Below the pieces are notes generated by a model. It was not told where the DNA came from and ran no database searches. It was given only the letters and a program-made list of their open reading frames with translations. From Ministeria vibrans ATCC 50519 (Eukaryota > Protista > Filasterea), in the NCBI GenBank assembly GCA_943704425.1, contig CALSCP010000932.1, positions 1-58,736 on the forward strand: a DNA stretch of 58,736 nt, written 5' to 3'. Made by a program: the position numbers and the translations under genes. Shown piece by piece: positions 5,246 through 54,469 of this stretch (positions within the stretch are counted from its first letter, which is position 1; each line of letters begins with the position of its first letter).

Positions 5246-5396
5246 AAGAAGAAGAAGTTGTATTTATTATAGTGTATATAAAATTTACAAAATAAATGGA
5301 TCGAGACTGGGAGGGAGGGGTGTTTATTCTCTACTTTTTACCGCTCAATCAAATCGAATTTGTCTCATTCAATGGAATCCAAAGATGTATTCAAAA

Positions 5397-6688: not shown

Positions 6689-6786
6689 CTGAATAAGCTC
6701 AACACAATAAGCCTAACCCCCCCCCCCCCCCCCCCCTCCTCTCTCACTAATGACTCCTTTTATAATACTGACGCATGGTTGTTTAG

Positions 6787-7368: not shown

Positions 7369-7474
7369 GACGACGAATGTCCCTTTCGATATTTCGGCAG
7401 GGAGGAATATAATATTGTGTAATTTTTTTACTGGTACTGCAAAGATCTCAAGAAGAAGGGGGAAAATGTGATAG

Positions 7475-9004: not shown

Positions 9005-9071
<67 letters not shown>

Positions 9072-9367
9072 TACTTATATAATACACCACACACATACAG
9101 ACAAACATAGCCTCTCTTTCTATCACTCTGTTTCTCTCTCTCTATCACTCTGTTTCTCTCTCTATCACTCTGCTTCTCTCTCTCTATCACTCTGTTTCTC
9201 TCTCTCTATCACTTTGTTTCTCTCTCTCTATCACTCTGTTTCTCTCTCTCTATCACTCTGTTTCTCTCTCTCTATCACTCTGTTTCTCTCTCTCTATCAC
9301 TCTGTTTCTCTCTCTATCACTTTGTTTCTCTCTCTCTATCACTTTGTTTCTTTCTCCCTCCCTCCTC

Positions 9368-9457
<90 letters not shown>

Positions 9458-26114: not shown

Positions 26115-26179
<65 letters not shown>

Positions 26180-29100
26180 ATTATTATTATTATTATTATT
26201 ATTATTATCAATTTCTATTATTATTATGTGTGTGTGTGTGCTAGTGAATAAACTTATATAGCTCACCTCAAGACAAACTTCTTCTTCTTGCCGTCTGACG
26301 TGTGCATCTCGTAGTTCTCCGGGAATGAGCCGGGCAGCATGCACCAGATTCCGTCCGTGTCGAGTTCGAGTGCCCGTCCAATCTGCTCGACAAGGATGCG
26401 CGCCTCCTTGATAATGTTGGCACCCGTATGGCACACAATGCCCGCCATCTCCATGCTGTACCAGCGAGCACCACGTCGCATCACATAGCCGTAGAACGAG
26501 TTGACTACGAAAACAAACAAACAGGAGGGGTAAGCAAAGGATTGTCATGGTGTCAAGTTCAACAGCTTACGAATGCACTTGTGAGCGAGCTGAAGTGAAT
26601 CGTAAAGAACCACCATGTTGAGGGCCTTTTGGCGCTCGACCATGGACTCACAGGCGTCCACCTTGCGCTTCCAGGTCTTGAGCAACGCCTTGAACTCGTA
26701 GCGACGGTCGCGAAAGGCGCGCACCGTGTCCACGTAGAAAGGGTTCTCGCGCATGCACACGGTAGACTCGCGTTCTTCCACCTTGGTCTCGCGCGTCTTC
26801 TTGTAAACCTTGCGACAGTAATCACCAAGACGCTTCTTGAGCAACGTCGACTGATCCTCGAGCGAGAGCTCTTGAAACATGCGCGAGGGCAAGCCGGGCG
26901 AGGCGCCTGGCACACGCTCCGACTCGAGCTGCATCTTGATCATTTCGTACTCGTTGCGACGTGCCGGGAGGTATTCGCCGCGCCAAGACCACTGGAGTTT
27001 GCGCTGGCACTGTGACTCGGGTCGGTTGAAGTCGCAGGCGGCGCATGTAGCCTCGTCGACGACTGACGAGGGCTGCAGACGATTCGTCAGGATGATGTTG
27101 GGGTACATGGCGCTCACATCAAGATGGTAGATGAGCGGCTCCTCCAGACGAAAGGGCGTGTCGCGCAGCTGTTCGAGTGTCTCCACAATTGAGTCGCGCA
27201 CCTCATTAAAGTTGGTGACGAGGTCCGGATCGACGTTGGCCTCGTGACGGATCTCGTGGCGCAGCGTGGGCTCGACACGATCAATGAGGTCTTGAAAAGC
27301 TTGCGGCACAAGACGGAACTGGTACTTAAGGTCGGAGCGAAACACACCAGACTCGAGCGCCTCGACGTGACCGCCCACGTACGTCTCAACATCGAGCAAG
27401 TGACCCTTGTACATAGAGCCGTGCTTTTGCTCCTGCTTGTTCGGCATGACAATCTCCGCCTTGAACGACTCGACCATAAGCAGTGTCTCACAGAGAGTGC
27501 CCGAGCCCTTGCGCAGCACCTCATCGGGCTCCATGGGAATAATGGTGCACAGCGCAAAGATGAAGGGGTGCACGTATTTCATGTAGAGGTAGTAGGTGGC
27601 GACGGCGTCGGACACGGAATAGTTGGACATGACCTAAAAAAGATGATAAACAAGATTTCTCCGTCATTTTGTTCTAATCTCTTGCAATTCCTTTCCATCT
27701 CCATTTCTTTCTTTTCTCCTCTCCAATATCTCTTTCTCTCTGTTTCACTTTGATTCTTTCTCTTCTTTCACTTCGATTCTTTTGTCCCTCGTTCACGTTG
27801 ATTCTTTCTCCCTCTCTCTTTGCTTCGTACCTGAGGCTGCTCAGAGGCCATGCGACACATCTCTTCGGGGTCAATTTCCAGGGGGTTGTAGCCGAGCTTG
27901 GCCTTGGTGACGGCCTTGAGGCCCTGGGAGCCCTGGGGCAGGTAAGAGTCGCGCTTGACCCAGCGGTAGGCGTCCATGTGACTGGCGTGGCGCGCCTTGT
28001 ACTCGTTTTGGTTGTCCTTGGCAAAACCAATCTCGTCAGCCATGCTGATGCCGTGCATTTCGGCGCGTTGCTCGACAAAGGGCCAATCGAAGAAATCGCC
28101 GTTGAAGGTGACAAAGATGGACGGGCGTGTCTGAACTATGTGTTCAAAGAAGCGCTCGAGCAGCGCCCGCTCATTGGGCTCGTTGAACACAATGAAGGGC
28201 CCTTCGTACTCGGGTTTCGGTGTGTACTCAAAGTCATCAACGTCCGCCGAGATGACTTCCCGGTTCGTAATCAGGTAGCCTACAAACAAGACACACAACG
28301 CACAAAGGCATAAAATAAAGCAACAAACGGGAGTGACCGTGGCGGTGCTAGGAAAAGCACAGGAGGAAACAGTACCTTGCCGATCAATCATGTACGAAAT
28401 CATCATAATGCTGTCAATCTTGGCATCGGGAAACTTGAGGGGCAGTTTGGTCGTCTCAATGTCAAAGGCAAAGACGACTGGATCAGGACGCTCGAGCAGG
28501 TCGGGACGATGCGTAATAAAAGTGTCGGTACCCGTGGATCGCACATCGTACCATAAACCTAACGGAAAAGTCGAGGAAAGAGAGAGAGAGAGAAAGGAGA
28601 GTTTGAGTCAAGGGAAGAGTGTAATTGGTGTGCACAAACATAGTTAATAAACAAAACACAAAAACAAAACAAAACAAAGTGCTTACCGACGTTGATTTGG
28701 TTGTCAATAGCGACGCGAATGTGATAGGGGACATCGTACTCACGGATGTCGGTGATGGAATCGAGCACATCGCCCTTGGTGGGCCCGGTGGTGGCGCGTG
28801 TGGCAGTGAAGTCGGTGTAGGCACTGGCGCCGCCCGCTGTGAACATGGCCGTGTGGGTGGTGCTTGCTGTGCTCTCTTTGGCACGTGCAGCGTTTTTTCG
28901 TACGGCGGTCAAAATGGGCTTGCGGACCTGGTCAAAGAAGAAAAACAAAAAAGAGAAGAGTGACAAGGTCAATTAAGAGCGAGAGGGAGTGTGTGTTACC
29001 CTGAGAAGATCGGACACATTGATGAATTTGAGTTTGAGATAGAGTTGGCGGATTCCAATGAGATGATTTTTCTACGAGAGGGAAATGTGTAACAATGAGC

Positions 29101-30439: not shown

Positions 30440-32197
30440 TCACTGTGTCAATGAAGCGAGAAGAGTATTGGTTTTGCGTACGGGACAATTGGCATCGGTG
30501 CGCAACATAGCCTCAAAATTATCATCATCGGATTCGACATTCTCAACAGAGCCCGCCTCGCAGTCGTGGAGGGTCGGAGAGACAGCGGGCGTGAGGCGTT
30601 TTGCGCGGCGGGTGAGTGTTGCACCTACGCGCGTGGTGGTGGCTGTGGTGACAAAGGAATGGGTACCGCTCGTGTCGAGTGGACGTGCAGAGGTATCTGC
30701 AGCAGCAGCGGCAGCAGCAGCAGCAGCAGCAGCAGTAGCAGTAGCAGAGCGAGGAGCACGCACGGGAGCCGGCTCAACTGACCTGAGGACCACTTTGCAC
30801 TGCGCCAACAGCTTCTTCTTCAGGCTCTCTTCATTCAAGGAGGTAATGTGACTCTCGACGAAAATTAGCACAATGTCGGACTCGATGTAGTCACGAAAGA
30901 CCTGCTCGAGCTCGCGTTTAAGCTTCTTCTCTTTCTTGGATAGTCCGTCATTCTCCTGGTCGAGCAGCTGATGCTTGAGCTGCACAATCGAGCGCAATGC
31001 TGTGTTGATGGCGACGGTCCACGCAACACTCTTGGGCAGTGCTACGTAACGACACACACAACAAAGTGACCGTCAGTATATCAACATCATTCATCCAAAT
31101 CATAGCTCGTTACGTTTTTTCTTGTGCTTCGGCGCTTCAAACTGGTCGAGAGAGTCGGACTCGGAGGGCACGGGATGGGGCGCCAGGGCAACGCGGAGGG
31201 CCTCTTCGGCGTGGGCGAGGTTCCGGCGGATGGGCTTGCACAGCGCGCTGGCAAGGAGACGGCGCAAGAGGCTCTTGAGCAGAATGGAGTTGCCGTAGTC
31301 GAGCGTGTCGGCAAGACGCACATGGATGGCGTTCTTCTGAGCGTCACTAAGATCGCTCAAGGCGGAATGGCACGCAAGGGCAACCCGCTCGACGGCCGGC
31401 TCAAGTGTCTCGGGACACGTGTTGGACTGCGGCCATCCCTCGGGGAACGTATCGCGCTTTTCTTGTTCCAATGACGTAAGTTCCATCACGACACTCTCGG
31501 GCAGTGAGACGGCAAGCGCCTCTTCCAACTCCGCCTTCTTGTTCTTGCTTCCACCCTTCTTCTTCTTGTCCTCTTCGCCCTTGTGCTTCTTCGCTGCATT
31601 CCCACCACTACCACTGCCACTACTCCCATCCGCCGCGCCACCACCCCCACCATTGCCACTTGGCCCACCCTTGGTTGCCGATAGGTCGTCGGTGTCTGCC
31701 TTGCGTTTCAAACCACGCTTCTTCTCGCCGGCCCCCGCATTGCTGCGGCTCTTGCCGCTACGCTTCGCTGCACCACTGACGCCACTGCCGCCAACCACTT
31801 CGACACGGCCACGATAGACAAAGAAACCACTCTCTTTGGTCATGGCGGCTCCCTCGGGCAACGTCAACTGGTCGTGATTGTCACTGTCGTCGATCCATGG
31901 GTCATTGTAGTCGTACTCATCGTCGCGTCGCCTGCGCCCTCGTGCCTTCCCCTTCTCCTTCACCTATAAACAAAAAAGATGAAGAAAAAACACAATAAAA
32001 ATGTAAGAGGTTCCGCTTGTTGGATGTGTTGCAGGGCAAACCTCAAGGAGCGCGGCTTTTTCACGTTCGCGCGCCTGGATCGAATCGATGACACCGGCCA
32101 GACCCGATGGAAGCCCAACAAGTGGCTCGTCGTCGTCGTCGTCTTCGTCGTCGTCGTCTTCGTCATCATCATTATCATCATCATCATCATCATCATT

Positions 32198-35414: not shown

Positions 35415-36404
<990 letters not shown>

Positions 36405-36410
36405 NNNNNN

Positions 36411-36518
<108 letters not shown>

Positions 36519-36555
36519 GTCTCTGTCTCTCTATCTTTCTCTCGCATAAGCCTCT

Positions 36556-39500
36556 TTAACAAGAATGGGTCACATCCGAGGAAGTCTTGGGGGTCGTCAA
36601 GTCGAGAGTGATGGGTGCTGCCTTGCCGGCAAGGAACACGTTGTTCAGGCACCCCAGGAAACCACCGCCGCCCAGCGACAAGTCGGCGTTGTGCGTGTCA
36701 ATCGACAGCGGTGCGCCCTTGGCACTGCCCGACACCCCGACAAAGTCCACAAACAGATATCCTTTGACGCCGTTGCGGCTGACCACCACTCGATGCCAGA
36801 AGCCATCGGCAATATTCACTGTCGATGTAATCACCGCAGTTGCTACACACACATACACACACATATCAGAACTCCACACATTACTCTCTTTCTCTGTGGT
36901 TCTTACATCCTCCGGCGTTAAACTGGAGCACGGGGAAGCCTGCGACGAGGGTGACGGAGAGCACGTCGGGGTGTCCATCCGAATTGGTCTGGTACAGAAG
37001 TGTGCCCGTTTGCGAGTCGGGGCGCACATTGAACGACACCGTCGTGTCCACGTCCGCATCAAACGGATCAAAGGTCGCAAAGGCCGCGCCCGAAGTGAAC
37101 GTGGCGATGCCACCAGGTGCCGCAGGATAGCTCACCTGCACCGCACGCGCCGTCGTCGTGTCCAGCTGGTTCATCAGGCGTCCATCGATCACAATGTTCT
37201 GCATCAGACCCACAAAGCCTTCGTACAGGCGATGCTTGATTCCGCCCACATTCAGCAGTCCCGTACTCACCTAAAATAAAATAATAATCAATTAATGTTA
37301 TTTTTATGATTATTATTATTATTATTATTGCAGTTCTTAGGGTTAGGGTTAGAAAAATAAAGTTCTTTTTTTTTTACCTGAAGTCCCGCACTAAGACCCT
37401 GCGACACAATGTTGAGCACAATGGTACCGTCAATGCGCACGGTAGAAATGGCGTCAACGCGGCTCCATACAATGTTGTGCCAAACGCTGTCGTCGTAGCG
37501 CGTCGTGGTCGTGCCCGAGCCCGAGCCCGAGCCCAAGTCGTAGCGCACCACAAGCTGGCCAATGTCGTTCAAGTAAATATCCACGTAGTCGTAGCCATTG
37601 GTCGACTGCTGGTAGATGAGGCGCTGAATGCGCAGCGTACTCACCGCGCGGAAGTCCATGCTCAGCGTCGACGTGCGTCCATCCTTGAACGACTGCGGCG
37701 CATTCAGCTCGACACGGCCGTCGCCACGCAGCGACAGAATACCCTCGTAGAAGTCGTTGCAGGTGGTACCCGAGAAAGAATTCACGCATGCACACTTGAA
37801 GGTTTGTGTATAGGTTGTCGGGGTGCATGTGCCACCGTTCAGGCATGGGTTCACCGCGCAAAGCGAACCAAACGTGTGTACACAGCCAAAGGCGACGTTC
37901 GTCTGCGAACTCTGCGTCAGGTCCAGCGCACTCAACGTGCCAAAGATCACGTTGCTAATGCACCCACGCACATTGGCACCCATCGTGAGCGTGTTTGTCT
38001 CAATCACGCGGTCCGACTGAGAGTGACTCACTGCAAACGGATTGCTCGCGTCCACCGTAAGCGTCGCCACGCCGGCACTCGTTAGCGAGAACCTCGCCGT
38101 GTGTGGGCGTCCGTCAGAGACGGTAAACGCAAAGGCGGTCACCTGCGTCTTCACACCCGAACCCGTGTCAAACACAACCGTGACCAAGCTGTTTGCAACA
38201 GTCATGGCAAGCGAGTCGCTGTTTGCCCCACTGCCACTGTTGGTCATGTCCAAGAGCACCGCCGACGAAGTCGTCGTCACAAAAGTCACCTGCACCTGAA
38301 TGTCGACAAAGCTCGGGGCCGGCGATGTGTTCAGTGTGAGCGAGCCCGACGAGCCGTCCAGACCAAAGGTTGCGGCCGTCTGAGGACCCGACAAAAGAGT
38401 GCAGACCGTGCCGTCGCCCGTGTACGCCGGGAAGCAGGCGCACGTAAAAGCCGTCGCTGTCTCGGTACAGGTGGCGTCAAAGGCACACGGCGTCAGTGTG
38501 AGAGGCTCGTCACACGTTGGCTTCAGAACGCAACCCACAGCCGGTTCGCCAATGTAGCCCGCCTGACACTCACAGGTGCCGCTGAACGAGCTCGACGAGG
38601 TCACACACTCGGTGTTGGCCGCAGTGCAGAAGTTGGGGTTCTCCACGCAGAAGTCAAGAGCTGTCTCGCACGACTCGCCCGTATAGCCGGCCGAGCAGGC
38701 GCACACCGCGAGCGTCTCAGAGGCAGCCGTGCACACACCTTGGTTGTTGCACACATTGGCAATGGTACAGGGGCAATCAATTCCGTTAGGCGTCACCGTC
38801 GCACTGCCGCTCAGCTGTGTCCACGTGTACGTCGACAACAGCTGCGAGTCAATTTGACAAATCTGCGCGTTGCCCGTCACCGTAATGCTTTTGAGCGCGC
38901 TAAACTGCACCAGCACATCAATGTTGGTCAGACCCGAGTTGTCCACAATGATCACGTCGGGTCCTTGGCAGTTGCTGCACGGGAAGGGCGCAATTGCAGC
39001 GAGAATTTCGAGTGTCGCAAGACCGGGACACGACGACACCTCGACGAGCGTTGGAGCGCTCGTGAGCGCCGACTGGCCAATAATCGAGGTGGTCTGCTCA
39101 AGCGAGTTGAGCTTGTTGAGGCTGAGCGCACTCAGCGACGTGATCGCCGAAGCCGACACCGACGTGAGGTTGGGGATGTCGTCCAGATCGAGAGCCGCGC
39201 CCACCGTGGCGAGCTGAGGCAGACTCACGCTGACCGTGGCCGGCAGATGCACAATGCTGAGGTCGGCCGAGACACTCACGAGCGAAGCAAAAGTCACCTC
39301 GGCGAGTGCAGGGAACGTCGAGAGGGTGAGCGACCCGTCGACACTGGTAAGCGCCGAAAGCTCTGACGTGTCCACAATAAGCGTAGAAGTAGAGGAGAGC
39401 ACAAGGGAGCCACCGACAACGCGCTCAAGCTGCGCCAATGGCGACAGGCTTGCCAGACTAGTTGTCGTGATAAGCAGGGTGCCCACCACTTCGACGCAAC

Positions 39501-42500
39501 CCGTTAGGAGCGACAACTCGTTGGGTGTGTCCACCAGAATCAGATTGTTCTTAGCAATGCAACGCATCTCGTTACAGCTTGAGCCCGTCCACTCGAAGAC
39601 AACAGCGGCATTGTCGCCGTTGAAGCCGCACGTGCACGTGTAGTCGGCAACGGTGTTGGCAACGGTGGTACACGTGCCGCCGTTCGCACACGGGCTCGAG
39701 TCGCACGCGACATTGACCACGTCGCACTGGTCGCCGGCAAAGCCGTTGGGACAGTCGCAGACAAATGCAGACGCACCATTGTCGACCATGTTGGTGCAGG
39801 AACCGCCATTCTGGCACGGGGATGATGCACACGCCGGCTCCAGTTCGCAGAAGTCTCCCAGGTAGCCCGCAAGACAGGTGCAAGAGAACGAGCCCGACAC
39901 GTCGGAGCACGTGCCGCCATTCGAGCAGGGCACCGAGGCACAGCCGTCAATGACACTCTCGCACAGGATACCTGTGTACTCGGGGACACACTGACACACA
40001 AAGGCGCCCGTCTGCGGCACACACTGAGCCGTACCCACAAGCGAACACGGCGACGAGTCGCAGAAGTCAATCTCGGTGTCGCATCCGCTGCCGGTGTAGG
40101 CAGCCGTGCATTGACACGCAAACGAGGAGGCATCGCACGTACCGCCGTTGACACACTCGGCCCCGTTGAGGCCACAGTCCGACGGACACGACACGTCCGT
40201 TGTGATGTCCGAGATGGCCGCGAGAGGGAAGTTGCCAAATGTCGAGGGCGTCTGCTTCTTGTTGTTTTGCGGATTGGTAATGGAACAGAGAAGGGGGTTG
40301 GCGGTGATCTGCAGAGTCTGCAGGCCGTTGGCCGTGTCGAGCGGCGAAACACTCTGGATCCAGTCAGCATTGGTAAGCACGGCGTTCGAGTCAATGATCA
40401 GACTGGAGCCCACGGAGCCGAGTGTCGCACCCGATTGCGATGTGAGTGCCGTCAGAGCACCATTGCCGGTAACAGACAACGTGTTGGGCACTCGGTCCAT
40501 GTTGATCAGAGTGATGGTCGACAGCACGTCGTTGTTCACAATCGAGAGGGAGCCTTGCGTGCCGACACACGGCGTCGCGAAGCAGTTGGCAATGGAAATG
40601 TCGCCGGCAATCTGAACCAGCTTGGCATTCTGCTCCACATTGAGACCACCCACGATGAGGGAGGGGAATGTCGCAGACACAAGCAATGAGGTCTGCTCGA
40701 CCGAAAGGAGACCCTCAACAACACGCAGATCGTTAAGGTGCGACGACACGTCGACATCGGTGACAATGCCCGTGATCGTCAGGCCGCCCGTCACACGCTG
40801 ACAACCCACCATCTCGCTCATGTGGACCGAAGAGCCCACAACGAGAGTGTCCGCGGGTGCAACCGCACTGCAGACAATGGTCTGGCACTCGGCGCCCGTA
40901 AGCGAGTAAACAATGTTGTTGAGAGGCGATGTGATTGCCGGCGGGCACTCGCACACGTATGCGTTCGGTGAAGGTTGTGTGCAGACCGAGCCAAACTGGC
41001 AGGGGCTGCTTGAGCACTCGTCCACATCAATTTCACATTGATCCCCCTCAAAGCCAGGCATGCAGGCGCAAGAGTACGCTTCGGGTGCCGTGGTTGCAGT
41101 GCAGGTACCACCATTGGCACAAGGTGTCGACGCGCAAGGCGTCAGACTCGTTTCGCAGGTGAGCCCGGTAAAGCCTGTGTCGCACACGCATGTGTGGCGG
41201 TTCACGCCATCGGTGCAGGTTGCGCCGTTCTGACACGGGCTGCTTGCGCACTCGTCAATGTTCGTGGCACAATCGGCGCCCGTGTAGCCCTTGGAGCAGG
41301 AGCAGACGTAGCCAACAGGCTGGTCAATGCACAGACCAAAGTTGAGGCAGGGGCTGCTAGCGCACTCGTTAATTGCTGACTCGCACTTGACGCCCGTGTA
41401 TCCTGTGGCGCAGGTGCACGCGTAACCGCCCACAAGATCGACACAGGTAGCGCCGTTGGTGCAAGGCGACGAGGCGCACTCGACGACCTGCTGCTCACAC
41501 TCGTCACCGGCAAACCCAACGGGACAGGTGCACACGTGCCCACCGCCCACGGTACTGCATGTTCCACCGTTGAGGCACGGCGACGATCCACACTGACTAA
41601 TAAGTTCCTCACAATTGGTACCCGTGTAGAACTGTGCACACTGACATGTGTAGCCATTGACAGCGTCGGTACATGTCGCACCATTCTGACAGGGCAGTGA
41701 CGCGCACTCGTTGGTACTTTCAGCGCAGGTGGGGCCCTCAAAACCGGCGGCACAAGCACAAGTGAATCCATTGGTGACGTCGTCGCAAGTCGCTCCGTTT
41801 TGGCACGGCGACGAAGCACACTCGTCGGTGTCGCTCTGACACTGCGAGCCAAAAAAACCGGCGGCACACGTGCAGGTGTAGCCGTAGATTTCGTCCTCAC
41901 AGGTGGCGCCATTCTCACACGGTGTGGATGCACACTCGTTTACATTGATGGTGCACAAAGTGCCCACAAAGCCGGGTGTGCACTCGCAGAAAAAGGCGTT
42001 AGGCACAGGTTGCAAGCAGTCACCATTGACACACGGCGACGAGGCACACTCGTCGACATCCTGGTCACAGAGCGGTCCAGTGAAACCAGTGTTGGCACAG
42101 TCGCACTCGAAAAGGTCTGGCATAGATCCCTCAAGACACAGGCCATTGGTACATGGCGACGAGTCGCACTCGTTGACGTCCACGTCGCACTGGAGGCCGG
42201 TGAAACCAGCGGCACAGCCACAGGCAAAACCATCCACAAGCTCGTTGCAGGTCGCGCCGTTGCTGCAGGGCGACGAATTACATTCAATAATCTCAATGTC
42301 ACACTGAGTGCCGGTGAAGCCTGAGGCACATTCGCAGCTGTACACACCAACGGTAGGTTCGGAGCAGTCACCGTCCACACACGGGCTGGAGGCACACTCG
42401 GCAATGTCGTCGGTACACGCGACACCCTCATAACCGGCGTCACATGTGCACTTGAAGCCAAGGGACTCTTCCGCACACGTGCCGTGAACGCAGGGCGACG

Positions 42501-45500
42501 AAGCACACGTGAAAACTCCGCTCTCGCATAGGACACCCGTGAAACCAGAAATACACACACAAGTGAATCCGTTCACTCCGTCGGTACAGGTGCCTCCGTT
42601 CTGGCACGGCGTGTTAGCGCAGTCGTCAATATCCGTCTGGCACTCGGCGTCGGTGAATCCCGCGACGCACTCGCAAGTGTAGCCGTTGACGTTGTCGCTA
42701 CAGGTGCCTCCGTTCTGGCACGGCTGGTTGGCGCAGTCGTCAATGTCCGTCTGGCAATCGGCGTCGGTGAATCCGGCAGCACACTGGCAAGTGTAGCCGT
42801 TGACGTTGTCGGTACAGGTACCGCCGCTCTGGCACGGCTTGCTCGCACACTCGTCCACATTGTCGGCACAGTGGTCGCCACTGAAGCCAAGAGCGCATGT
42901 GCACGTGTACGAGTTGAGCAGCTCATTGCAGGTCGCGCCGTTCTCGCACGGCATCGACGCACACTCAAGCAGGTCCTGGTCACAGAGAGTGCCCGTGAAG
43001 CCTGCAGCGCAATCGCACGAGAACCCGTCGACAGCGTCGACACACGTAGACGAGGCGTGGCACTGGTTGCCAGCGCAGTCGTCAATGTCGGTCTCGCAAT
43101 CAGAGTCGGTGAATCCTGCGGCACACTCGCAAGTGTAGCCGTTGACGTTGTCGGTACAGGTGCCTCCGTTCTGGCACGGCGTGTTGGCGCAGTCGTCGAT
43201 ATCCGTCTGGCACTCGGCGTCGGTGAATCCCGCGACGCACTCGCAAGTGTAGCCGTTGACGTTGTCGCTACAGGTGCCTCCGTTCTGGCACGGCTGGTTG
43301 GCGCAGTCGTCAATGTCCGTCTGGCAATCGGCGTCGGTGAATCCGGCAGCACACTGGCAAGTGTAGCCGTTGACGTTGTCGGTACAGGTACCGCCGCTCT
43401 GGCACGGCTTGCTCGCACACTCGTCCACATTGGATGGTGCTGGCAATCGGCGTCGGTGAATCCGGCAGCACACTGGCAAGTGTAGCCGTTGACGTTGTCG
43501 GTACAGGTACCGCCGCTCTGGCACGGCTTGCTCGCACACTCGTCCACATTGATGGTGCACTGGTCACCAACAAAGCCGGGGGTGCAGACGCAGAAGTACT
43601 GGCCAACCACCTGCTGTGTGCACACGCCGTTAACACAAGGTGACGAGCTACACTCGTTAATGTCCTGCTCACAAGAGTCTCCCATAAAGCCAGAGGCACA
43701 GTTGCAGCTGTAGCCATTGACGGCGTCGGTACAGGTGCCGCCGTTGACGCAGGGTGTCGAGGCGCACTCGTCAATGTCGTTGCTGCAGTCGTTGCCATTG
43801 AATCCGGCCACACAGACGCATGTAAATCCGTTGTCGCCATCCGTACAGGTTCCGCCGTTCTGGCACACGGCGTTAATACAATCGTCAATGTTAGTCTGAC
43901 AATCAGTGCCGGTGAATCCCGCTGCGCATGTGCAAGTAAAGCCGTTGACACCATCCTCACATGTACCGCCGTTCTGGCATGGTGCGTTTGTACAATCGTC
44001 AATGTTCGTCTGGCAATCGGCGTCGGTGAATCCAGTGGAGCACGCACAGGTGTAGCCGTTGACGGAGTCGAAACAGCTGCCACCGTTCTGACACGGCGTG
44101 CTAGCGCACTCGTCAATTTCCACGTCGCACAGATCGCCAGTAAAGCCCGGATCACAGATGCACTCGAAAGCCGATGATGCAAGCTGCGAGCAGACACCAT
44201 TGAAGCAGGGTGACGAGTCACACTCGACAATGTCTACGCTGCAGTCGACTCCGGTAAAGCCTGAGGTGCAGTCACACTCAAACGTTCCCGGCTTAGTACC
44301 CTCCGAACAAGTGCCGCCATTGTGGCAGGGCGACGACAAGCACTCGATCGTCTCCTCGGCACAGGTGGTGCCTTGGAAGCCAGCGGCGCAGGTGCAAATG
44401 AAAATAGTTGTCAGGTCGCGGCAGGTGGCACCGTTCTCACACGGCGATGACGCACATTCGTTGATGTTTTCATTGCAAAGGGTACCGGTGAACCCGTTAG
44501 GACACTGACAGGTAAAGCCGGCAACATGATCAATGCACACCGCGCCAGAAGCACACGGTTGACTGGCACACTCGTTGATATTGACCTGGCAACGAGGTCC
44601 AGTGAATCCAGCAGAGCAACTACACACAAACGCATCGACACTGTCAAAGCACGTCGCGCCATTGGCACATGGGATGCTGGCGCACTCGTTCAACTCAGAC
44701 TCACAATGAGTACCACGAAAGCCCGGTGCACAAATGCAGGAGTAGCCCTCGCCAAAGTCGCGGCACGTGGCGCCATTGCTGCAAGGCTGTGATGCGCACT
44801 CAGAAAAGTCCAACTCGCAACGGTCGCCAAAGAAGGCTGTGGTGCACTCACATGTGTACGTGTTGGGTGTCGCACCGTTGGAGCAGGTACCACCGTTAAG
44901 ACACGGATTCGAATTACACTCGTTCACGTCAGCATTGCAAAGCGTGCCAGTGAAGCCCGCCAAGCACTGGCACGTGAAACCAGCACCATTCTCGAGGCAA
45001 GTGGCGCCATTGCCGCACGGATTGGAAGTGCACTCAATGGTCTCCGTCGTGCACACACTATCGGTAAAGCCGGCAGCACACTGGCAAGTGTAGCCGAGAA
45101 CAGCGTCGACACAGGTGCCACCATTGGCACAGGGGGCCGAGAGACACTCATCGATTGCAGTGTTGCAAGTGGCACCCTCAAAACCGGTGCCCGTGCAGTC
45201 ACACTCAAAGAAATTGGCAAAAGAGCCTTCGGAGCAGGTACCACCGTTGAGGCACGGGTTCGAGTCGCATTCGTTCGCGTCCTCATCACAAAGCGTGCCG
45301 GTGAAGCCAGCGGCACACTGGCAAGTGTAGCCGAGGTGAGCGTCAATGCAAGTGGCGCCGTTGGCACAGGGAGCCGACAGACACTCGTCTGTTGCAGTGT
45401 TGCAAGTGGCACCCTCAAAACCGGTGCCCGTGCAGTCACACTCAAAGAAGTTGGCAAAAGAGCCTTCGGAGCAGGTACCACCGTTGAGGCACGGGTTCGA

Positions 45501-48500
45501 GTCGCATTCGTTCGCGTCCTCATCGCAAAGCGTGCCGGTGAAGCCAGCGGCACACTGGCAAGTGTAGCCGAGATGAGCGTCAGAGCAGGTAGCGCCGTTG
45601 GCGCAGGGAGCCGAGAGACACTCGTCTGTTGCAGTGGTGCAAGTGGCACCCTCAAAACCGGTGCCCGTGCAGTCACACTCAAAGAAGTTGGCAAAAGAGC
45701 CTTCGGAGCAGGTACCACCGTTGAGGCACGGGTTCGAGTCGCATTCGTTCGCGTCCTCATCGCAAAGCGTGCCGGTGAAGCCAGCGGCACACTGGCAAGT
45801 GTAGCCGAGATGAGCGTCAGAGCAGGTAGCGCCGTTGGCGCAGGGAGCCGAGAGACACTCGTCTGTTGCAGTGTTGCAAGTGGCACCCTCAAAACCGGTG
45901 CCCGTGCAGTCGCATACAAACTCATTGGGTTTTTGTCCTTCGGAACACGTGCCACCGTTGAGGCAAGGGTTCGAGTCGCATTCGCTTGCGTCCGCATCGC
46001 AAAGCGTGCCGGTGAAGCCAGCGGCACACTGGCAAGTGTAGCCGAGGTGAGCGTCAATGCAAGTGGCGCCGTTGGCACAGGGAGCCGAGAGACACTCGTC
46101 TGTTGCAGTGTTGCAAGTGGCACCCTCAAAACCGGTGCCCGTGCAGTCACACTCAAAGAAATTGGCAAAAGAGCCTTCGGAGCAGGTACCACCGTTGAGA
46201 CAAGGGTTCGAGTCGCATTCGTTTGCGTCCTCATCGCAAAGCGTGCCGGTGAAGCCAGCGGCACACTGGCAAGTGTAGCCGAGATGAGCGTCAGAGCAGG
46301 TAGCGCCGTTGGCACAGGGAGCCGAGAGACACTCGTCTGTTGCAGTGGTGCAAGTGGCACCCTCAAAACCGGTGCCCGTGCAGTCGCATACAAACTCATT
46401 GGGGTTTTGTCCTTCGGAGCACGTGCCACCGTTAAGGCAGGGGCTCGAGGTGCACTCGAGGGCATCCTCCGAGCAGTCGGTACCCGTAAAACCAACGGCA
46501 CAGTCGCAAGCAAACGAATCGAGCATGTTGGTACAGGTGCCTCCGTTCTGACACGGCGTTGACAGACATTCGTCAACGTCTTCATTACAAGTGGTACCAG
46601 TGAATCCGCTGGGACACACACACGTAAACGACTGAACCCCGTCAACACATGTCCCTCCGTTGTTGCAGACAGTTTGTTGCGGACAGTCGTCAATGTTGGT
46701 CTCGCATATGTCGCCTTGAAAGCCACTGCTGCAAAGACAGAAGAAGGCACCAAGCGAGTCAAAGCAAACGCCGTCATTAAGGCAAGGATTCGAATCGCAC
46801 GAAAGCAATTGCTTCTCACAGTGGATTCCGGTGAAAAGCGATGGACAGGTGCAAATGTAGCCGTCCACAAGGTCGACACAGGTGCCGCCAAACTGACATG
46901 GAAGCGACGCACACTCGTTTGTGTTTGTACCGCACGAGGTTCCCTCAAAACCCGCAGCGCACGAGCAAGTGTACGAGCCGATGCCATCCGTGCAGGTTGC
47001 ACCGTTCTCGCACGGTGCCGAAGCACAATCATCAATGTTGCTCGCGCAGTGGGTGTCGGTAAAACCAAGAGCACACTGGCACGTGTAGCCATCCACAATG
47101 TCGATGCAAGTGGCACCATTTTGGCAAGGCATCGAAGCGCACTCAATCACCTCAACACCGCAATCACTGTTGGTGAAGCCCGAAGCACACTCGCATGAAA
47201 AGGTGTTCACTCCGTCGGTACAAGTGCCTCCGTTCTGGCACGGCGTGTTAGCGCAGTCGTCAATATCCGTCTGGCACTCGGTGTCGGTGAATCCCGCGAC
47301 GCACTCGCAAGTGTAGCCGTTGACGTTGTCGCTACAGGTGCCTCCGTTCTGGCACGGCTGGTTGGCGCAGTCGTCAATATCCGTCTGGCAATCGGCGTCG
47401 GTGAATCCGGCAGCACACTCGCAAGTGTAGCCGTTGATGCCATCTGTGCATGTGCCGCCGTTCTGGCACGGCTTGCTCGCACACTCGTCCACATTGTCGG
47501 CACAGTGGTCGCCACTGAAGCCAAGAGCGCATGTGCACGTGTACGAGTTGAGCAGCTCATTGCAGGTCGCGCCGTTCTCGCACGGCATCGACGCACACTC
47601 AAGCAGGTCCTGGTCACAGAGAGTGCCCGTGAAGCCTGCAGCGCAATCGCACGAGAACCCGTCGACAGCGTCGACACACGTAGACGAGGCGTGGCACTGG
47701 TTGCCAGCGCAGTCGTCAATGTCGGTCTCGCAATCAGAGTCGGTGAATCCTGCGGCACACTCGCAAGTGTAGCCGTTGACGTTGTCGGTACAGGTGCCTC
47801 CGTTCTGGCACGGTATGTTAGCGCAGTCGTCGATATCCGTCTGGCACTCAGCGTCGGTAAATCCCGCGGCGCACTCGCAAGTGAAGCTGTTCACACCGTC
47901 GATACAGGTGCCGCCGTTGTGACACGGTGCGCTATCACAGTCGTTTACATTTTCGCTACACTCGGTGCCAGTGAACCCGGTGGGGCACAAGCAAAAGAAA
48001 ATGTTAACAGCGTCGGTGCATGTTCCGCCGTTTTGACAGGGGTTGGAGGCACACTCGTCAATGTTCGTCTCGCACATCACACCTTCAAAGCCCGTCAGAC
48101 AATCACACGTGTAGCTATTGAGACCGTCAACACAAGAGCCGCCAAACTGACAAGGAATCGACGAACACTCGTTGACATCGTTGCTGCAGTCGTTGCCATC
48201 AAATCCAGCCAAGCACTCGCAAGAGAAGCCGTTGACGTTGTCGGTACAGGTGCCTCCGTTCTGGCACGGCGCGTCGGTGCAGTCGTCAACATCCGTCTGG
48301 CACTCGGCGTCGGTGAATCCCGCGACGCACTCGCAAGTGTAGCCGTTGACGTTGTCGCTACAGGTGCCTCCGTTCTGGCACGGCTGGTTGGCGCAGTCGT
48401 CAATGTCCGTCTGGCAATCGGCGTCGGTGAATCCGGCAGCACACTCGCAAGTGTAGCCGTTGATGTTGTCGGTACATGTGCCGCCGTTCTGGCACGGCTT

Positions 48501-51500
48501 GCTCGCACACTCGTCCACATTGTCGGCACAGTGGTCTCCACTGAAGCCAAGAGCGCAAGTGCACGTGTACGAGTTGAGCAGCTCATTGCAGGTCGCGCCG
48601 TTCTCGCACGGCATCGACGCGCACTCAAGCAGGTCCTGGTCACAGAGAGTGCCCGTGAAGCCTGCAGCGCAATCGCACGAGAACCCGTCGACAGCGTCGA
48701 CACACGTAGACGAGGCGTGGCACTGGTTGTCAGCGCAGTCGTCAATGTCGGTCTCGCAATCAGAGTCGGTGAATCCTGCGGCACACTCGCAAGTGTAGCC
48801 GTTGACGTTGTCGGTACAGGTGCCTCCGTTCTGGCACGGCCACTCNNNNNNCAGCGCAGTCGTCAATGTCGGTCTCGCAATCAGAGTCGGTGAATCCTGC
48901 GGCACACTCGCAAGTGTAGCCGTTGACGTTGTCGGTACAGGTGCCTCCGTTCTGGCACGGCTCACTCGCGCACTCGTCAATACCTTGGGCGCAAGTCGAG
49001 CCGGTGTAGCCGGAAGCGCATGTGCAGGAGAAACCAGCACCATCCGGCAGTTCGACGCATGTGGCGCTATTCTTGCACGGGGACAAGTCACAATCGGCAA
49101 TATCCGTTTGACAGTTGGCACCCTCGAACCCGCTGCGACACAGACACACATAGAGATCGGGGCCTTCGAAACAAACGCCCTGATTCATGCACGGGCTCGA
49201 CAAACACTCGTTAATTGATTCGGTACACAACGTGCCGGTGCGGCCCGACGGGCAGTCGCATGAGAACGAAAAGAAGCCATTGTTGCAGGTGGCGCTTGCA
49301 TGGCACGGCTGTGAAGCGCAATAGTCGATGGGTGTTTCGCAGTGAACGCCTTCGTGGCTGGTGAGGCTGCAGTCGCACTCGAAGCCACCGAGGTTGTTGA
49401 CGCACTCGCCACCGTTTGAGCAAGGCGATGATTCGCACTCATCAATGTCCTGGTTGCACAGCGCCCCGGTGAGGCCTGCAGCGCAGTCGCACGTAAACGA
49501 CAGATGAGCATCGACGCATGTGGCGCTCGCGTGGCAAGGGCTCGAGGCGCACTCGTCCGTCGGTGTCTCGCATGTAGTTCCCTCAAAGCCCGTGTTGGCA
49601 CAGTTACAGGTGAAAGAATTGATGCCGTCGGCGCAGATGCCGCCATTGCTGCACGGGTTGGTCTCGCAATCGTCAATGTTGGTGGTGCACTGACCGTCGG
49701 TGAAGCCAGAGGGACACAGGCAAGCATAACCATTTTGCGCGTCAAAGCAAATACCGGCATTCTCACAGGGGCTCGAAGCGCACTCATTAATGCCCACGTC
49801 GCAGTTGGTACCGGTGAATCCGGAGGCACAGTCGCACGAGTAGCCATTGATCAGGTCGTTGCAAGTTGCTTGTGCGTGGCAAGGACTCGCGGCGCAGTCA
49901 TCAAAGTTGTCGGCACAGGTGTTGCCGGTAAATCCGTCGACGCAGGTACACGAGAAGGCATTCGCCTCGTTGGAACAGGTGCCACCATTGAGGCAGGGGC
50001 TGCTCGCGCACTCGTCAACGTCCGTGTCGCAAAGTGCACCGGAGAAGCCAGTACCGGTACAATCACAGCTGAAGCCGTTGACCGAGTCGGCACACGCGCC
50101 GCTGTTGAGACACGGGCTCGAGGCGCACTCATTCGTGTCCGAGTCGCACAGAGGCCCAAAGAAGCCAGTGGTACAGTCGCAGGTAAAGCCGTTGTCGCCG
50201 TCAACACATGTGCCCTCGACACACGGTGTTGAAACGCACTCGTCAAGATTGGTCTCGCAGCTGTCGCCGACAAAGCCGTCGCGGCACAGGCACACGTGGG
50301 TCTGCACACCGTCGATGCAGGTTGCCCCATTGAGGCAGTTGGAGGAGACACAGTCGTCGATGTTCTCCTCGCACATCGCGCCAGTGAAACCCGATGTGCA
50401 TACGCAGTTGTAGCTGTCGATACCGTCCACGCACACCCCCTGATTCTGACAGGGCGCCGAGAGGCACTCGTTGACTTTGACGGAGCAGTCGTGGTCGGTG
50501 AAGCCGCTAGCGCACTCGCATGTATAGGTGTTGTCGCCGTCGACACACTGACCGCCATTCTGACAGGCGCCCAGAAAGCAATCATTGACGTTGTCGCTGC
50601 AGTCGATACCTTCGAAACCGACGGGACAGGCGCAGACAAAGGCCTTGCCATCGGGAATACATGTGCCACCGTTTTCACAAAGGGGCGAGCAGTCTTCGGC
50701 GGCACGACGCAAACGCTCGTGTTCCGCCTCGGAGACAAGGTGGTGGTTCTCGGCAGTGGGATTCACAGCGAGGCGTTCGATGAGGTCGTCCCAGACGGCA
50801 GACGAATCAATGCCCAGAGTGCGCAGCATGTTGCGCGCCACCGAAGCGTTGACGGCAGCGCCCGACGGCTGCGGTACGTAGGTGAGATCAACATCATTGT
50901 CGGCGAGCGAACTGGCGTGCATGACAAAGGCGCGGCAAAGCTGCACTGCGGCGGCATGGTAGTCACCGGAAAACGTCGCGAGAATGTCAAAGGCACGGAA
51001 CTCGGCGGTGGTGGCCGCATCGAGAGGCACATGCTCGTTGAGGGGCAGCAAATGAATGATGTTGAGCGCATGGTACTTCCACATCTTGGTCGAGTCCGGT
51101 GCGGCCATGGAAAGGGCACCACCGGCGGTGTGAATAAGTTCGTCGGCGGCGAAGCGCTTGAAGAGGTGCACCAGGTTGGCGAGGGTACGCTCGTTGGCGT
51201 TCAATTCCGAAAGACGCTCCACAAGCTCGGGATGGGTGGTGTGGAGAGGCGTGGTGAAACGGTTGAGGTCACCACCAAAGTGTGTGGTACCAAATAGACG
51301 ACGCATGACTGGGTCAAAGCTTTCGTAGAGGAGCACCAGATTGGTGAGGGCTCGACCGTTGGTGGCAATGCATGAGGCGTTGACGTGCACGTGCATGCCC
51401 GAGCGATCGCCTTCGGTGACCAGACCGGACTCGCGCAGGGCGTTGACAACGTTCACGAGCGTGGCTGAGTCGAGAAGCGGCGGGGTCACAAGCTCGTAGC

Positions 51501-51791
51501 CGTCCAGGACATAGCCAACGTTGACGTACTCGGGCGACACTCGCCAAGAGCGTTTGAGCGAATCAACGTACGTGACGGTCTGAAGACGACGGACAGGAAA
51601 CTGCGCACCCAGGGGGTGCTCTTCGACACGAACGCTTCGCGCGAGGGAGCCATGCGCGCCGTCAACCGCCTTCGCGACAACGTGCATGATTTTTTCGTAG
51701 TTTTCGGCGGGCGCGCTGTTCACGTGCTTGATAAGCATAGAGCCCACACCCGCATACTCAATCTCAACACCATAGGCAAATGAATCACGAT
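36556..51791 (-). CDS. Giant (~5,000 aa) protein: putative amidoligase domain, RLRR site, ~90-100 EGF/cbEGF repeats, two receptor-L-like segments and LamG domains; 5' exon(s) missing
   Basis: The ORFs at 48760-51804, 42573-49151 and 37288-43560 are one gene broken by an N gap (48846-48851) and a 119-bp duplication (~43321-43551). Introns at 37271-37377 and 36843-36906; splice acceptor at 51792-51793. Confidence 0.85.
45070..46440 (-). repeat. Coding tandem repeat with a 237-bp unit (two EGF domains, 79 aa), about 5.5-6 near-identical copies
   Basis: Shadow ORFs end at 45330, 45567, 45804, 46041 and 46278, an exact 237-nt period. Confidence 0.9.
50880..51791 (-). other. Putative amidoligase (Amidoligase_2-like, glutamate-cysteine ligase/COOH-NH2 ligase fold) domain within the giant gene
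   Basis: Ordered motifs FAYGVEIEY, GYELVTPPL, SGMHVHVN, KYHALNI and TTAEFRAFD. Confidence 0.75.
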
Positions 51792-51963
51792 CTACAACAC
51801 ACAAGGCAATGCGTGAAAAATCGTCGGGTCAGAAATGAAAACAGTTAAGGTCGTGCAGGCGAAGACGCACCCACGCACCNNNNNNNNNNGTGGGCCGCTT
51901 TTTTCTCTTTCCATCTTTATTGGTACTGGTACTCTTTTTTTTGTTGTGGTTGTTATTGTTTAC

Positions 51964-54469
51964 CTTCTTGTAGAGGTTGTAGAGATCGGCAAAGGCGGTA
52001 CGAGACGGGTAGCCACCTTGGAGAAGGGCAAGCACCTCCACCATACCGGCGCACTGGAGCTGCGAGAGAATCTCGCCACCCGAGAAAATACCGGGCTTCA
52101 TCTTCTGGTTGGGCTTGATGCAACGGATGAAGTTGGTACGCGTAGACTTGAGCTACAGATGAGAAAGAAGCACAAAAGAGAGGCGTTAATGACAAAAAGA
52201 AAGTAATTATTATACAATATACAAAAAAAAAAAAACTTAAGTTACCTTGGCCATGAGCTCGTTGAGCTGGAGCTTGAACTTGGTGCCGAGCGACGAGAAA
52301 TGGAGCTTGCCCGAGTCCTTGGACTTGGTGCTGCCGTCCTCTTGGATGACGGGGACCTCCTCGAAGAGGCTCTTGGTGAAGGGGTCGACCGCCTCCTGCA
52401 TGAGCGCCTCGAGATCACCGTGGAGGGCGTCGTTGTTCTTGTCGATGAAACCGTCGGTCTGGTAGCAGACGGCACCGGCGAAGTGGCGGACGAGGAAGCC
52501 TTCCTCCTCGTTGAGCTTGCGGTGCGAGGGGACCTTGGACTTGCGGGGCACGTCGAGACGGAAGTGCTTCTTGTGGCGCGAGTGAATCTGCTGACCAAAG
52601 TGCTTGTCGCTGCGGTTGGGCAGCTTGCTCTCCTCGTCGAGCATCGAGAAGATACCGGTGCCCTTGGCCTCGATGAGATCAATGACATCCTGGTTGTCGA
52701 GGTACTCAATCTGCGTGTAAGAAATACCCTCCTGGTTGTAGATTTCCTGCTCCTGCTTGAGCACCTGAGGAAAGAAAAAAAATTGAATACAAAAATAGAC
52801 AACAAGTCGTTCTTATTTATTTTACCTTCTCGTTAAAGAACTGCTGGAGCTTCTCGTTACAGAAGTTGATGCAGAACTGCTCGAAAGAGTTGTGGAGGAA
52901 GAACTCGAAACCGGCAATATCGAGGACACCGATGAAGTGAGCGGACTGGTCGTAGGGGAAGCACTCGTTGACGCGACCGACGATCCAGTCGAACATCTTG
53001 GAGTAGATGCTCTTGGCGAGAGCATCACGAGCGTGCGACGCGGCCTCGGGCTCGAGAGGCACACGGTAGATGGTACCCATGGAGTTGCCACGCTTGGACT
53101 GCATGATACGGCTGGTGAGACGCTCCTTGAGGTCCTCTGGGTTGATGCCCATCATCATGGCGACACCGCTGGCGGACTTTTGAGAGTCGGCCTTGATCTG
53201 CGAGCCTCCCTTGGCGTCGGTACCTTCCTCAAAGGTGATGTTACCGAGATGGAGAACAGCGGCAATGATGCGCAGGACGTTCTGTTGTTCCTCGGGGGCC
53301 ATGCCGACGCGCGCCATGGCGTCTTCGAGCTCGGCGAACTCACCGACGTCATCGAGACCGTCAATTTTGCCGAGGTTGCTGTCCTTGAGGTAGGTGAACG
53401 ATTCGGCGGGGCCAAGACCCAGATTCTTGCGGTAGTCAGCCGAGGCGCCACGGCACAGACGGTAGAAGACGTGGTAGTTTCGCTCCTCGTTGGTCTGGTG
53501 GATGATGCGCGACTTCTCGAGGACGTAATGCGAGATGTAGGCGCCGTCAATGACGCACTGCGTGGTAAAGTGCAGCTCGATAAACTTGCCGAAGCGAGAC
53601 GAGTTGTGGTTGCGGGTGGTCTTGGCGTTGCCAAAGGCCTCGAGCAGCGGGTTTGCCTGCAGAATGCGCTCCTCAATGTCACCCTTGTCCGAGCGACCCA
53701 CCACTGACAGGTAACGGATGACGTACTTGGTCGTTTCTGTCTTGCCAGCACCGGACTCACCGGAGACAATGACGGATTGAGACATCTAAAAAAATAGTAT
53801 TATTAATATATTATAATTATTGCATTTCTTCTTCTTTTTTTATTACCTTGGTCGCCTTCATGTCACGGAAAGCCTTGTCGGCAATGGCGAACACGTGCGG
53901 GGGCTCTGTGCCGAGCGACTTGCCAACGTACGACTCAATGTGCTCCATGGTGTAGATGGGCAAACGAACAAAGGGGTTGATGGCAATGAGGATGTTCGCG
54001 GTGAAGGTGTACATGCCGCACTGCTTCACATCACCCTCAACGTAACGCTTGCGCAAGTTGTGCAAAAGCGAGGCCTCTAAAAACAAGGTGGGATGTTGAG
54101 TTCTGTTCAAATATAATTATAGTAATAATAACAATTCACAACACTTACCGTTCAGGAACATGAGACCACAGTTGTCAGCAACAGCCGTGTTGTCCGCGTC
54201 GTCAGCGGGGAAGGATCGGTCGAAAGGAACGACAAAACCCTGAAACAAAAAAAAAACAAAAAAAAAAGTCAACCAATGTTAAAAGAAGAAAAAGAAAAAC
54301 GGAAAGGAAATAAACCTTACCGGCTTGCCGTTGAGAGGACGCACTTCGAGGCCATCGGCTCCGACTGAAAAACGAAGAAGAGACGGAAACGATGAGTACT
54401 TGTGTTCCTTCCGAATGTTTTTTGGATTCTGTTCAACTTACTGTCGTCAATCTCGGCAAGGACGTAACC
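51964..54469 (-). CDS. Myosin VI-like motor domain, multi-exon; start not located and 3' part lost at an N gap
   Basis: [56 protein letters not shown]...[20 protein letters not shown] and [12 protein letters not shown] are characteristic of class VI and close relatives. Confidence 0.85.

Follow-up and report, generated by a model that had tools for sequence, protein, structure and literature searches.

The COOH-NH2 ligases form an enzyme family (Iyer, Abhiman, Burroughs and Aravind 2009, as cited in PMC2938197 and PMC4431377) which is known from phages, plasmids, bacteria, giant viruses and fungi. Here we describe a gene of the filasterean Ministeria vibrans ATCC 50519 in which a predicted member of this family (the head) precedes a very long array of EGF repeats, L-domain-like modules and LamG domains. 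The gene lies on the minus strand of contig CALSCP010000932.1, in a window of 58,736 nucleotides (nt) to which, as a whole, all positions refer. Gene neighbours mentioned for the family are an amidotransferase-like thiol peptidase or an Aig2/GGACT cyclotransferase. Its fold is known from cytoplasmic enzymes that make glutamine, glutathione precursors and Pup-protein conjugates at the expense of adenosine triphosphate (ATP); the pupylation enzymes PafA and Dop share this fold, and PafA joins a carboxylate to protein lysines. In animal EGF-LamG matrix and polarity proteins, we know of no enzyme head. We consider it rather probable, from sequence comparison and modelling, that the locus is a real giant gene encoding a bacterial-derived, predicted extracytoplasmic carboxylate-amine ligase on an adhesive stalk, and this is the best explanation at hand.

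The Pfam profile PF12224 (Amidoligase_2) matched the head with an E-value of 7e-10 and 39.6 bits, against a cut-off of 22. The match extends from profile position 5 to 243 of 245 and spans residues 11-292 of the open reading frame (ORF) at 48760-51804, the head itself measuring about 300 amino acids (aa). An earlier note on this DNA, made from the sequence alone, had named this family from a series of motifs. Both points were borne out: the model is covered nearly in full, and GVEIE, YELVTPPL, SGMHVHV, KYHALN and TAEFR occur in the claimed order in the translation of this minus-strand ORF (the first as GVEIEY), followed by EGF repeats. Alignments of 30-40 homologues define 22 near-invariant residues, all of which the window retains (numbering from the Arg codon at 51789: E9, E11, D76, R80, W82, E87, D96, G97, E99, P103, S130, H133, E156, N176, R201, E217, W237, K238, N243, E263, R265 and D268). 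The window likewise has the full ordered set of motifs (ExE, E..DGxE.V.PP, S..H.H, WKY..N and xEFR.xD), which vary little or not at all among these homologues.

An AlphaFold2 model based on the homologue alignment had a predicted local distance difference test (pLDDT) score of 89.9 and a predicted template-modelling (pTM) score of 0.91, and placed the motif residues on predicted strands 6-14, 81-87, 97-101, 131-137 and 261-268. Foldseek searches of BFVD returned 41 matches at E<=1e-3, almost all of them phage or giant-virus amidoligases with template-modelling (TM) scores of 0.4-0.5. In the PDB, the YbdK-type structures 1tt4 and 1r8g came out on top (E 4e-5 to 5e-4, probability 1.0), followed by GshF, GshA, glutamine synthetases and GatB; TM scores for these PDB matches were only 0.3-0.4. 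These matches agree with the earlier assignment to the glutamine synthetase/glutamate-cysteine ligase fold. A profile search with the head gave no PDB match, and neither the head nor its bacterial kin is represented by an NCBIfam model. Like YbdK/GCS2, GshA and glutamine synthetase, the head belongs to this fold class by Foldseek; those enzymes are cytoplasmic and mostly stand-alone or oligomeric, and the resemblance to them (TM 0.3-0.4) is accompanied by no detected sequence or profile similarity. The ExE, E, H and ExR pattern on the sheet resembles what we take to be the metal and phosphate ligands of E. coli GshA, a correspondence that alignment could not confirm.

Compared with Amidoligase_2 at large, the head shows a profile match above the cut-off, amidoligases as its top structural matches, and the same strand-borne acidic, His and Arg residues. 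It differs in scoring 39.6 bits to the family model as opposed to 229 bits to its own subfamily, whose members mostly stand behind a signal peptide at the N-terminus of repeat proteins of 800-5,000 aa; furthermore, no peptidase or cyclotransferase neighbour was present at 24 bacterial loci of the subfamily. The head is apparently an intact carboxylate-amine ligase of a distinct, extracytoplasmic branch of Amidoligase_2, as judged from its sequence and model.

The gene was searched as separate pieces and exons, one at a time, rather than as a joined, gap-bridged or spliced full-length protein. Four minus-strand ORFs (48760-51804, 42573-49151, 37288-43560 and 36556-37113) tile the region, and the assembled gene amounts to at least 15.2 kb, or about 5,000 codons, its true repeat number being uncertain. 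It occupies a 15.4-kb block (36411-51879) flanked by N gaps which cut both neighbouring genes; the window has no N runs other than 36405-36410, 48846-48851 and 51880-51889. The passage from head to EGF repeats within 48852-51791 contains no stop, no N and nothing intron-like, and the junction, near 50,700, lies within 3,028 nt of N-free sequence. The single uninterrupted frame described in the earlier note thus holds for 48852-51791, across the junction, and not for 36556-51791 as a whole, which contains two frame changes and two introns. We read it as one real, very large nuclear gene, with the following features in the direction of transcription:

51792..51878, minus strand: 3' part of the first intron, with GTGCGT donor-like sites right after the 10-N gap, a pyrimidine-rich tract and the acceptor AG at 51793-51792
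48852..51791, minus strand: exon piece A, gap-free, with the head, a helical linker of about 70 aa and the first 16 EGF repeats, in one frame of 979 codons from 51789
50929..51774, minus strand: Amidoligase_2 (PF12224) head of predicted glutamine synthetase/glutamate-cysteine ligase fold (Pfam, conservation, AlphaFold, Foldseek)
48846..48851, no strand: 6-N assembly gap with frame change; the preceding 110 nt recur exactly at 48840-48731
43440..48845, minus strand: piece B, about 46 EGF repeats, many of the calcium-binding type, including a 237-nt tandem array
43321..43550, minus strand: frame break near 43440, with two adjacent copies of an identical 111 nt (starts 43550 and 43431, spacing 119 nt)
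37378..43431, minus strand: piece C, about 29 EGF repeats, two L-domain-like modules and two LamG domains, with Cys-rich/EGF spacers between modules
~40000-40600 and 39349-39525, minus strand: L-domain-like leucine-rich modules of piece C
~37972-38283 and ~37620 to the exon end at 37378, minus strand: LamG domains of piece C (Pfam)
37271..37377, minus strand: GT-AG intron, AT-rich, 107 nt, phase 0
36907..37270, minus strand: exon D, which completes one LamG and opens the last
36843..36906, minus strand: GT-AG intron, 64 nt, phase 1
36556..36842, minus strand: last exon, end of the last LamG and stop codon (36556-36558), aligning to the C-terminal end of the homologue P0001

Directly after the head match, Pfam identified 16 EGF modules in 617 aa. 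The whole gene contains 82 Pfam EGF matches or 91 six-cysteine units, in line with the "dozens" of repeats first noticed. As for the L-domain and LamG content claimed at the same time, the LamG domains were recovered, together with one L-domain (PF01030) above the Pfam cut-off (the module at ~39349-39525, 31.2 bits against 21.8); the other, upstream module (~40000-40600) scored 19.8 bits, below the cut-off. Three LamG domains are present in the product and alternate with EGF near its end, which consists of a LamG domain and a polar C-terminus. No hydrophobic C-terminal segment and no membrane anchor were seen in the product.

At the 5' side, position 51791 carries no start codon and directly follows a splice-acceptor-like ...ttgtgtgttgtAG; the reading of the head exon begins in phase 1, and the 10-N gap (51880-51889) lies 88 nt upstream of its start. 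Since the head exon opens at a splice acceptor below a 10-N gap with donor-like sites, a first exon, expected to encode the signal peptide, is absent from the assembly. The genomic contig L001, which encodes P0001, contains the corresponding arrangement: an ATG exon with a signal-peptide-like leader, a 64-nt GT-AG phase-1 intron, and a head that resumes at x/RDLAFGMELEY (the slash marks the exon boundary). In codon and phase, this intron agrees with that at x/RDSFAYGVEIEY of the window gene. The earlier placing of the head at the tip of the stalk stands in so far as the head precedes the EGF array; we infer the tip position itself, the first exon being lost in the gap.

The relatives of the head were collected by an exhaustive phmmer search of 1.84 billion cluster representatives, which gave 73 matches at E<=1e-3; word-index protein searches with the head alone and with residues 1-310 of P0001 found only the queries themselves. 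All 12 matches at E<=1e-30 have the head close to the N-terminus, and all except P0011, a 277-aa fragment, are proteins of 1,058-2,426 aa (11 of the 12). The best match, P0001 (229 bits, 44% identity), is a 1,195-aa protein of L001 (run SRR33270664) with a head, about 5 EGF repeats and 3 LamG domains in one 3.6-kb ORF. P0002, P0003 and P0011 derive from the filastereans Pigoraptor vietnamica (EukProt entry EP01136_P014521) and P. chileana (EP01137_P034667 and P024472). P0002 and P0003 consist of a signal peptide, the head, one EGF repeat, a mucin-like Ser/Thr/Pro stalk, a membrane helix and a cytoplasmic tail, a predicted layout which makes the Pigoraptor versions type-I membrane proteins whose head faces outward. 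No animal homologue of the head was present among the 73 matches.

The head is 35-44% identical to those of P0001 and the Pigoraptor orthologues, in which EGF follows the head. P0001 also agrees in where the intron lies, in the EGF-LamG tail and at the C-terminal end: the tail at 37378-39000 is collinear with P0001 residues 522-959 (29% identity, E 1e-35), and the last exon aligns with residues 1090-1193 of 1195. The window gene differs from P0001 in about 85 additional EGF repeats and the two L-domain-like modules, and from the Pigoraptor proteins, with their one EGF, mucin-like stalk and membrane helix, in having no membrane helix. A sequon, N-[AG]-[ST], occurs just past the catalytic His in all five heads compared (window, L001 and Pigoraptor), at the position where the bacterial homologues shown carry D-G-x, and is consistent with passage of the head through the endoplasmic reticulum (ER). 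Literature searches yielded no description of an amidoligase head joined to EGF, in agreement with the earlier note, which knew of no described protein of this kind; the architecture is not unique to this genome, however, in view of these unannotated orthologues in public data. The finding would be a variant within a known enzyme family, with an architecture that appears not to have been described before.

In codon preference, the head correlates with the EGF part, with DNA polymerase epsilon and with myosin (r 0.81-0.86), and its G+C content at third codon positions (GC3) is 0.69, against a comparison value of 0.70. Since its codon use matches that of host genes, its exon opens at a eukaryotic splice acceptor and its intron is shared, we take the head to be native DNA of the host, not contamination, and the fusion to be real. 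A more remote sequence, P0033 (L010, 751-2238; run ERR13847227), is a 495-aa protein with a leader, a divergent head and a Cys-rich C-terminal region; it joins the eukaryotic heads through a very long branch and may represent a further eukaryotic lineage with a different tail.

The remaining close matches (P0004-P0010, P0012 and P0013) are bacterial proteins with a leader and a head, and the named ones are from Planctomycetota. ComEA-type helix-hairpin-helix (HhH; PF12836) repeats were found in five of eight scanned bacterial proteins, with no HhH match in P0006, P0008 and P0012. Planctomycete examples such as RMG07446.1 and MBL4848115.1 carry no annotation beyond hypothetical, HhH-domain or ComE-like protein. 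Remoter members occur in Oligoflexia, Bdellovibrionales and Elusimicrobiota; several of these have HEAT repeats, which form the stalks of the Bdellovibrionota versions. A hydrophobic leader, scored by a crude hydropathy rule, precedes the head in 50 of 57 judged homologues (median head start at residue 34); together with the type-I topology predicted for Pigoraptor, this agrees with the extracellular setting proposed earlier. Two members of the giant family occur together in some Planctomycetota genomes. On the contig L007 they stand side by side (1325-6994 and 7001-10471), an HhH-repeat giant of 1,889 aa lying directly upstream of the amidoligase-headed one. Three metagenome-assembled genomes provided two separate loci each (L013/L018, L012/L014 and L016/L020).

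The heads of the planctomycete giants are 33-39% identical to that of the window over about 300 aa, including a helical "...LGLDP..." extension past the core; they share the order of leader, head and long stalk, and form the closest branch in the trees. In contrast to the window gene, their stalk is composed of Cys-free HhH repeats rather than EGF, L-domain and LamG modules, they lack an N-x-S/T sequon after the catalytic His, and the bacterial genes are without introns. The nearest bacterial kin are giant Planctomycetota proteins built of signal peptide, head and repeats, and not the stand-alone bacterial enzymes that the earlier note had in mind.

In a 47-row tree, the eukaryotic heads and one long-branched sequence fall on one side of a branch with support of 100/99, and they join nine planctomycete-type heads in a set of 14 (100/100) against 33 others. 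This tree places the eukaryotes as sister to the Planctomycetota heads (85/96). In a tree with named genomes of GTDB and Bdellovibrionota as the outer group, the eukaryotes lie inside Planctomycetota (99/99). Nesting within Planctomycetota is not secure, given the sister position in the larger tree, which an approximately unbiased (AU) test does not reject (p 0.21). The horizontal origin suggested in the earlier note nevertheless gains from the phylogeny, in which the eukaryotic clade stands next to or inside the Planctomycetota heads. Because the bacterial distribution is broad and the eukaryotic one narrow, a single transfer from a bacterium to a eukaryote, before the split of these protists, appears to be the economical reading. 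Moreover, since the nearest bacterial kin already possess a signal peptide, a head and a long repeat stalk, the layout would have been inherited from bacteria and the stalk swapped.

Two groups of animal-type proteins offer further comparison. Teneurins combine a prokaryotic YD-repeat half with EGF repeats, and a horizontal transfer in a choanoflagellate has been proposed for them (PMC3278476). As in the teneurins, EGF repeats are here coupled to a bacterial module in a surface protein from a unicellular animal relative, with huge exons. Unlike them, the module is a ligase head and not a YD shell, and the proteins would be secreted or type I rather than type II membrane proteins; teneurins, in addition, persisted into animals, while the head has no animal homologue among the matches collected. 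Crumbs, EYS, Slit and agrin-type proteins resemble the tail in their arrays of calcium-binding-type EGF repeats which end in alternating EGF and LamG; the window protein is distinguished from this group by the absence of a membrane helix and of a Crumbs-type tail, and by its interspersed L-domain-like modules.

The two frame changes within the gene have a common character. At the 6-N gap (48846-48851) the 110 nt ahead of the gap recur exactly, starting 5 nt past it; near 43440 the 119-nt spacing of the identical 111-nt copies is not a multiple of 3, and this break sits in an EGF array of 114-nt period whose copies otherwise match at about 76%. Past each break, the reading continues through thousands of open codons with well-formed EGF, L-domain and LamG modules. 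Because both breaks fall within exact duplications of about 110 nt, they are probably assembly joins, i.e., unmerged contig ends in repeats. A tandem array at 45062-46385 contains 5.6 copies of a 237-nt (two-EGF) unit with 92% matches, and part of the expansion of the EGF array is, by this pattern, recent tandem duplication. Multi-EGF blocks of 720-770 nt, dispersed through the gene (42553-43432, 47205-47927 and 48214-48981), share 93-96% identity, which suggests recent internal duplication or gene conversion; they probably caused the assembly breaks. More sequence is clearly missing at the gaps than their sizes in the scaffold indicate.

Three explanations would deny the gene, or the place of the head in it. 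That assembly has produced a chimeric fusion, or that contaminating bacterial DNA has been joined to a eukaryotic EGF gene, might be suspected from a patchy scaffold whose N gaps cut the neighbouring actin (36405) and myosin (51889) genes and from the duplicated ends at two joins within the gene; the head-EGF junction, however, lies inside 3,028 nt free of N, the head agrees with host genes in codon use and GC3, its exon starts at a eukaryotic acceptor with an intron position common to L001, the head-EGF order recurs in an independent genomic contig and in two predicted Pigoraptor proteins of EukProt, and head and tail both align with P0001. Contamination was rejected on codon use and the common intron position, and this whole explanation, which we hold to be barely credible, is already largely refuted. 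If the frame changes that stand in the given sequence were real, the gene would be a decaying pseudogene producing only the head and about 16 EGF repeats, or nothing; such decay seems quite improbable where each change falls on an exact 110-111-nt duplication of the adjoining sequence, in one case at an N gap, and where thousands of open codons beyond the breaks lead to a C-terminus matching that of P0001. Finally, the head exon begins at an acceptor, and myosin-motor exons lie about 170 nt upstream on the same strand, across the 10-N gap, so the gene might extend upstream (a myosin motor, for example, or a large exon hidden in the gap) and the head might not be its N-terminal tip. A myosin-head fusion was rejected on splice phase: the last visible myosin exon ends ...YNLYKK/gtaaac in phase 0, which cannot be spliced in frame to a head exon requiring phase 1. 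On topological grounds, the fusion of a cytoplasmic motor with about 90 disulfide-rich EGF repeats is implausible, most judged homologues have only a short leader before the head, and in L001 the order is signal-peptide exon, intron, head; we regard an upstream extension of any kind as very improbable.

The product of a real gene with a bacterial-derived ligase would comprise, in order, the expected signal peptide, the ligase head, the helical linker, about 90 EGF repeats, two L-domain-like modules and three LamG domains. The head would have been acquired from bacteria before the split from Pigoraptor, the head-on-stalk layout retained and the stalk replaced by animal-type adhesion modules, after which the EGF array would have expanded in the M. 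vibrans genome through tandem duplication. By analogy with other members of the fold, the head may use Mg-ATP to turn a carboxylate into an acyl-phosphate, which would then be joined to an amine to form an amide or isopeptide bond; ATP- and metal-dependent formation of amide bonds is a prediction for the whole family as well. Because the head would pass through the secretory pathway attached to a binding stalk, its likely substrates are macromolecules of the cell coat, the matrix or a bound target surface, and catalysis might take place either in the lumen of the ER/Golgi, which contains ATP, or at the cell surface with pericellular ATP. From the leaders of its homologues, we infer that the window protein would be secreted.

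Several observations weigh against this proposal. Direct hhalign comparison with E. coli YbdK and GshA gave probabilities below 1%, and the proposed correspondence of residues to metal, ATP and phosphate ligands derives from fold matches and from the GshA site. The signal peptide is not visible in the window gene, its first exon falling in the 10-N gap, and the two frame breaks could in principle be real. The AU test does not reject a position of the eukaryotes as sister to Planctomycetota rather than nested (p 0.21), so that the direction of transfer is argued from distribution. The 24 bacterial loci of the subfamily contained no conserved neighbour hinting at a substrate. ATP, furthermore, is scarce outside cells and in the bacterial periplasm, and for this reason a ligase behind a signal peptide fits badly. 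These last points also favour a head that is no ligase at all, acting instead as a hydrolase or amidase, or as a pseudo-enzyme that binds a carboxylate- or phosphate-bearing surface molecule with avidity provided by the stalk. Dop, a depupylase of the same fold as the ligase PafA, gives a precedent for the hydrolase; nearly all homologues are exported to ATP-poor compartments, the bacterial loci hold no partner genes for substrate synthesis, and no characterised member of the subfamily was found in the literature. On the other side, the near-invariant acidic, His and Arg residues are all kept from Bdellovibrionota to eukaryotes at identities of 25-44%, the pattern of a working metal/nucleotide site and not of a decayed one. 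A non-ligase head is on the whole unlikely, but is only weakly separated from the ligase reading because a hydrolase would keep much of the same site. The fuller proposal, in which the head would be an active ATP-dependent amide/isopeptide ligase outside the cytoplasm, cross-linking or modifying coat, matrix or prey-surface macromolecules bound by the stalk, an invention of bacteria (Planctomycetota and the predatory Bdellovibrionota) captured by close unicellular animal relatives and re-mounted on EGF/LamG, is itself tentative and somewhat doubtful.

If active, the head would carry out ATP-driven covalent chemistry in the extracytoplasmic space and represent a new class of extracellular protein or glycan ligase. 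Transglutaminase and lysyl oxidase, the known matrix cross-linkers, work differently. An apparently intact head behind a signal peptide on very long stalks is found in two bacterial phyla and in filasterean-like protists, which flags an uncharacterised family of giant exported proteins in Planctomycetota (HhH stalks, possibly DNA-binding) and Bdellovibrionota (HEAT stalks). With regard to animal origins, the gene would be a second case, beside the teneurins (PMC3278476), of a bacterial module on an EGF-type adhesion architecture, and it shows the scale of EGF-array expansion that can be reached in unicellular animal relatives.

The genes around the amidoligase locus are of conventional type. 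Upstream, exons of a myosin motor occupy 51963-53900 and beyond on the minus strand (Myosin_head E 6e-126 for 52817-53785; GESGAGKT and FIRCIKPN motifs; short AT-rich introns); the gene breaks off after the ...YNLYKK/gtaaac boundary above the 10-N gap, and its neck and tail are missing from the scaffold. On the other side, an actin gene (35430-36404, plus strand) is cut by the 6-N gap at Pfam profile position 332 of 410, and a 133-nt (CT)n microsatellite follows directly after this gap, within 36405-36543. The catalytic subunit of DNA polymerase epsilon is encoded at 21488-28544 (minus strand), with an exon of 1,488 codons and best matches in animals at only 35-41% identity; no match to itself was returned, and the proteome of this genome therefore seems to be missing from the protein collections. 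Two further minus-strand ORFs, one with a HUN (HPC2/ubinuclein) domain (31100-31963) and one with BNR/sialidase-like repeats (10734-11780), have no apparent relation to the amidoligase gene.

Exons in the window have a G+C content of about 58-60% and GC3 values of 0.66-0.84. The introns seen are for the most part 60-110 nt long and strongly AT-rich, often with runs of A or T (e.g., 37271-37377, 52766-52825 and 53786-53845), and this contrast in composition between exons and introns could help gene prediction in the genome. The introns at 36843-36906 and 51792-51878 of the amidoligase gene are not AT-rich.

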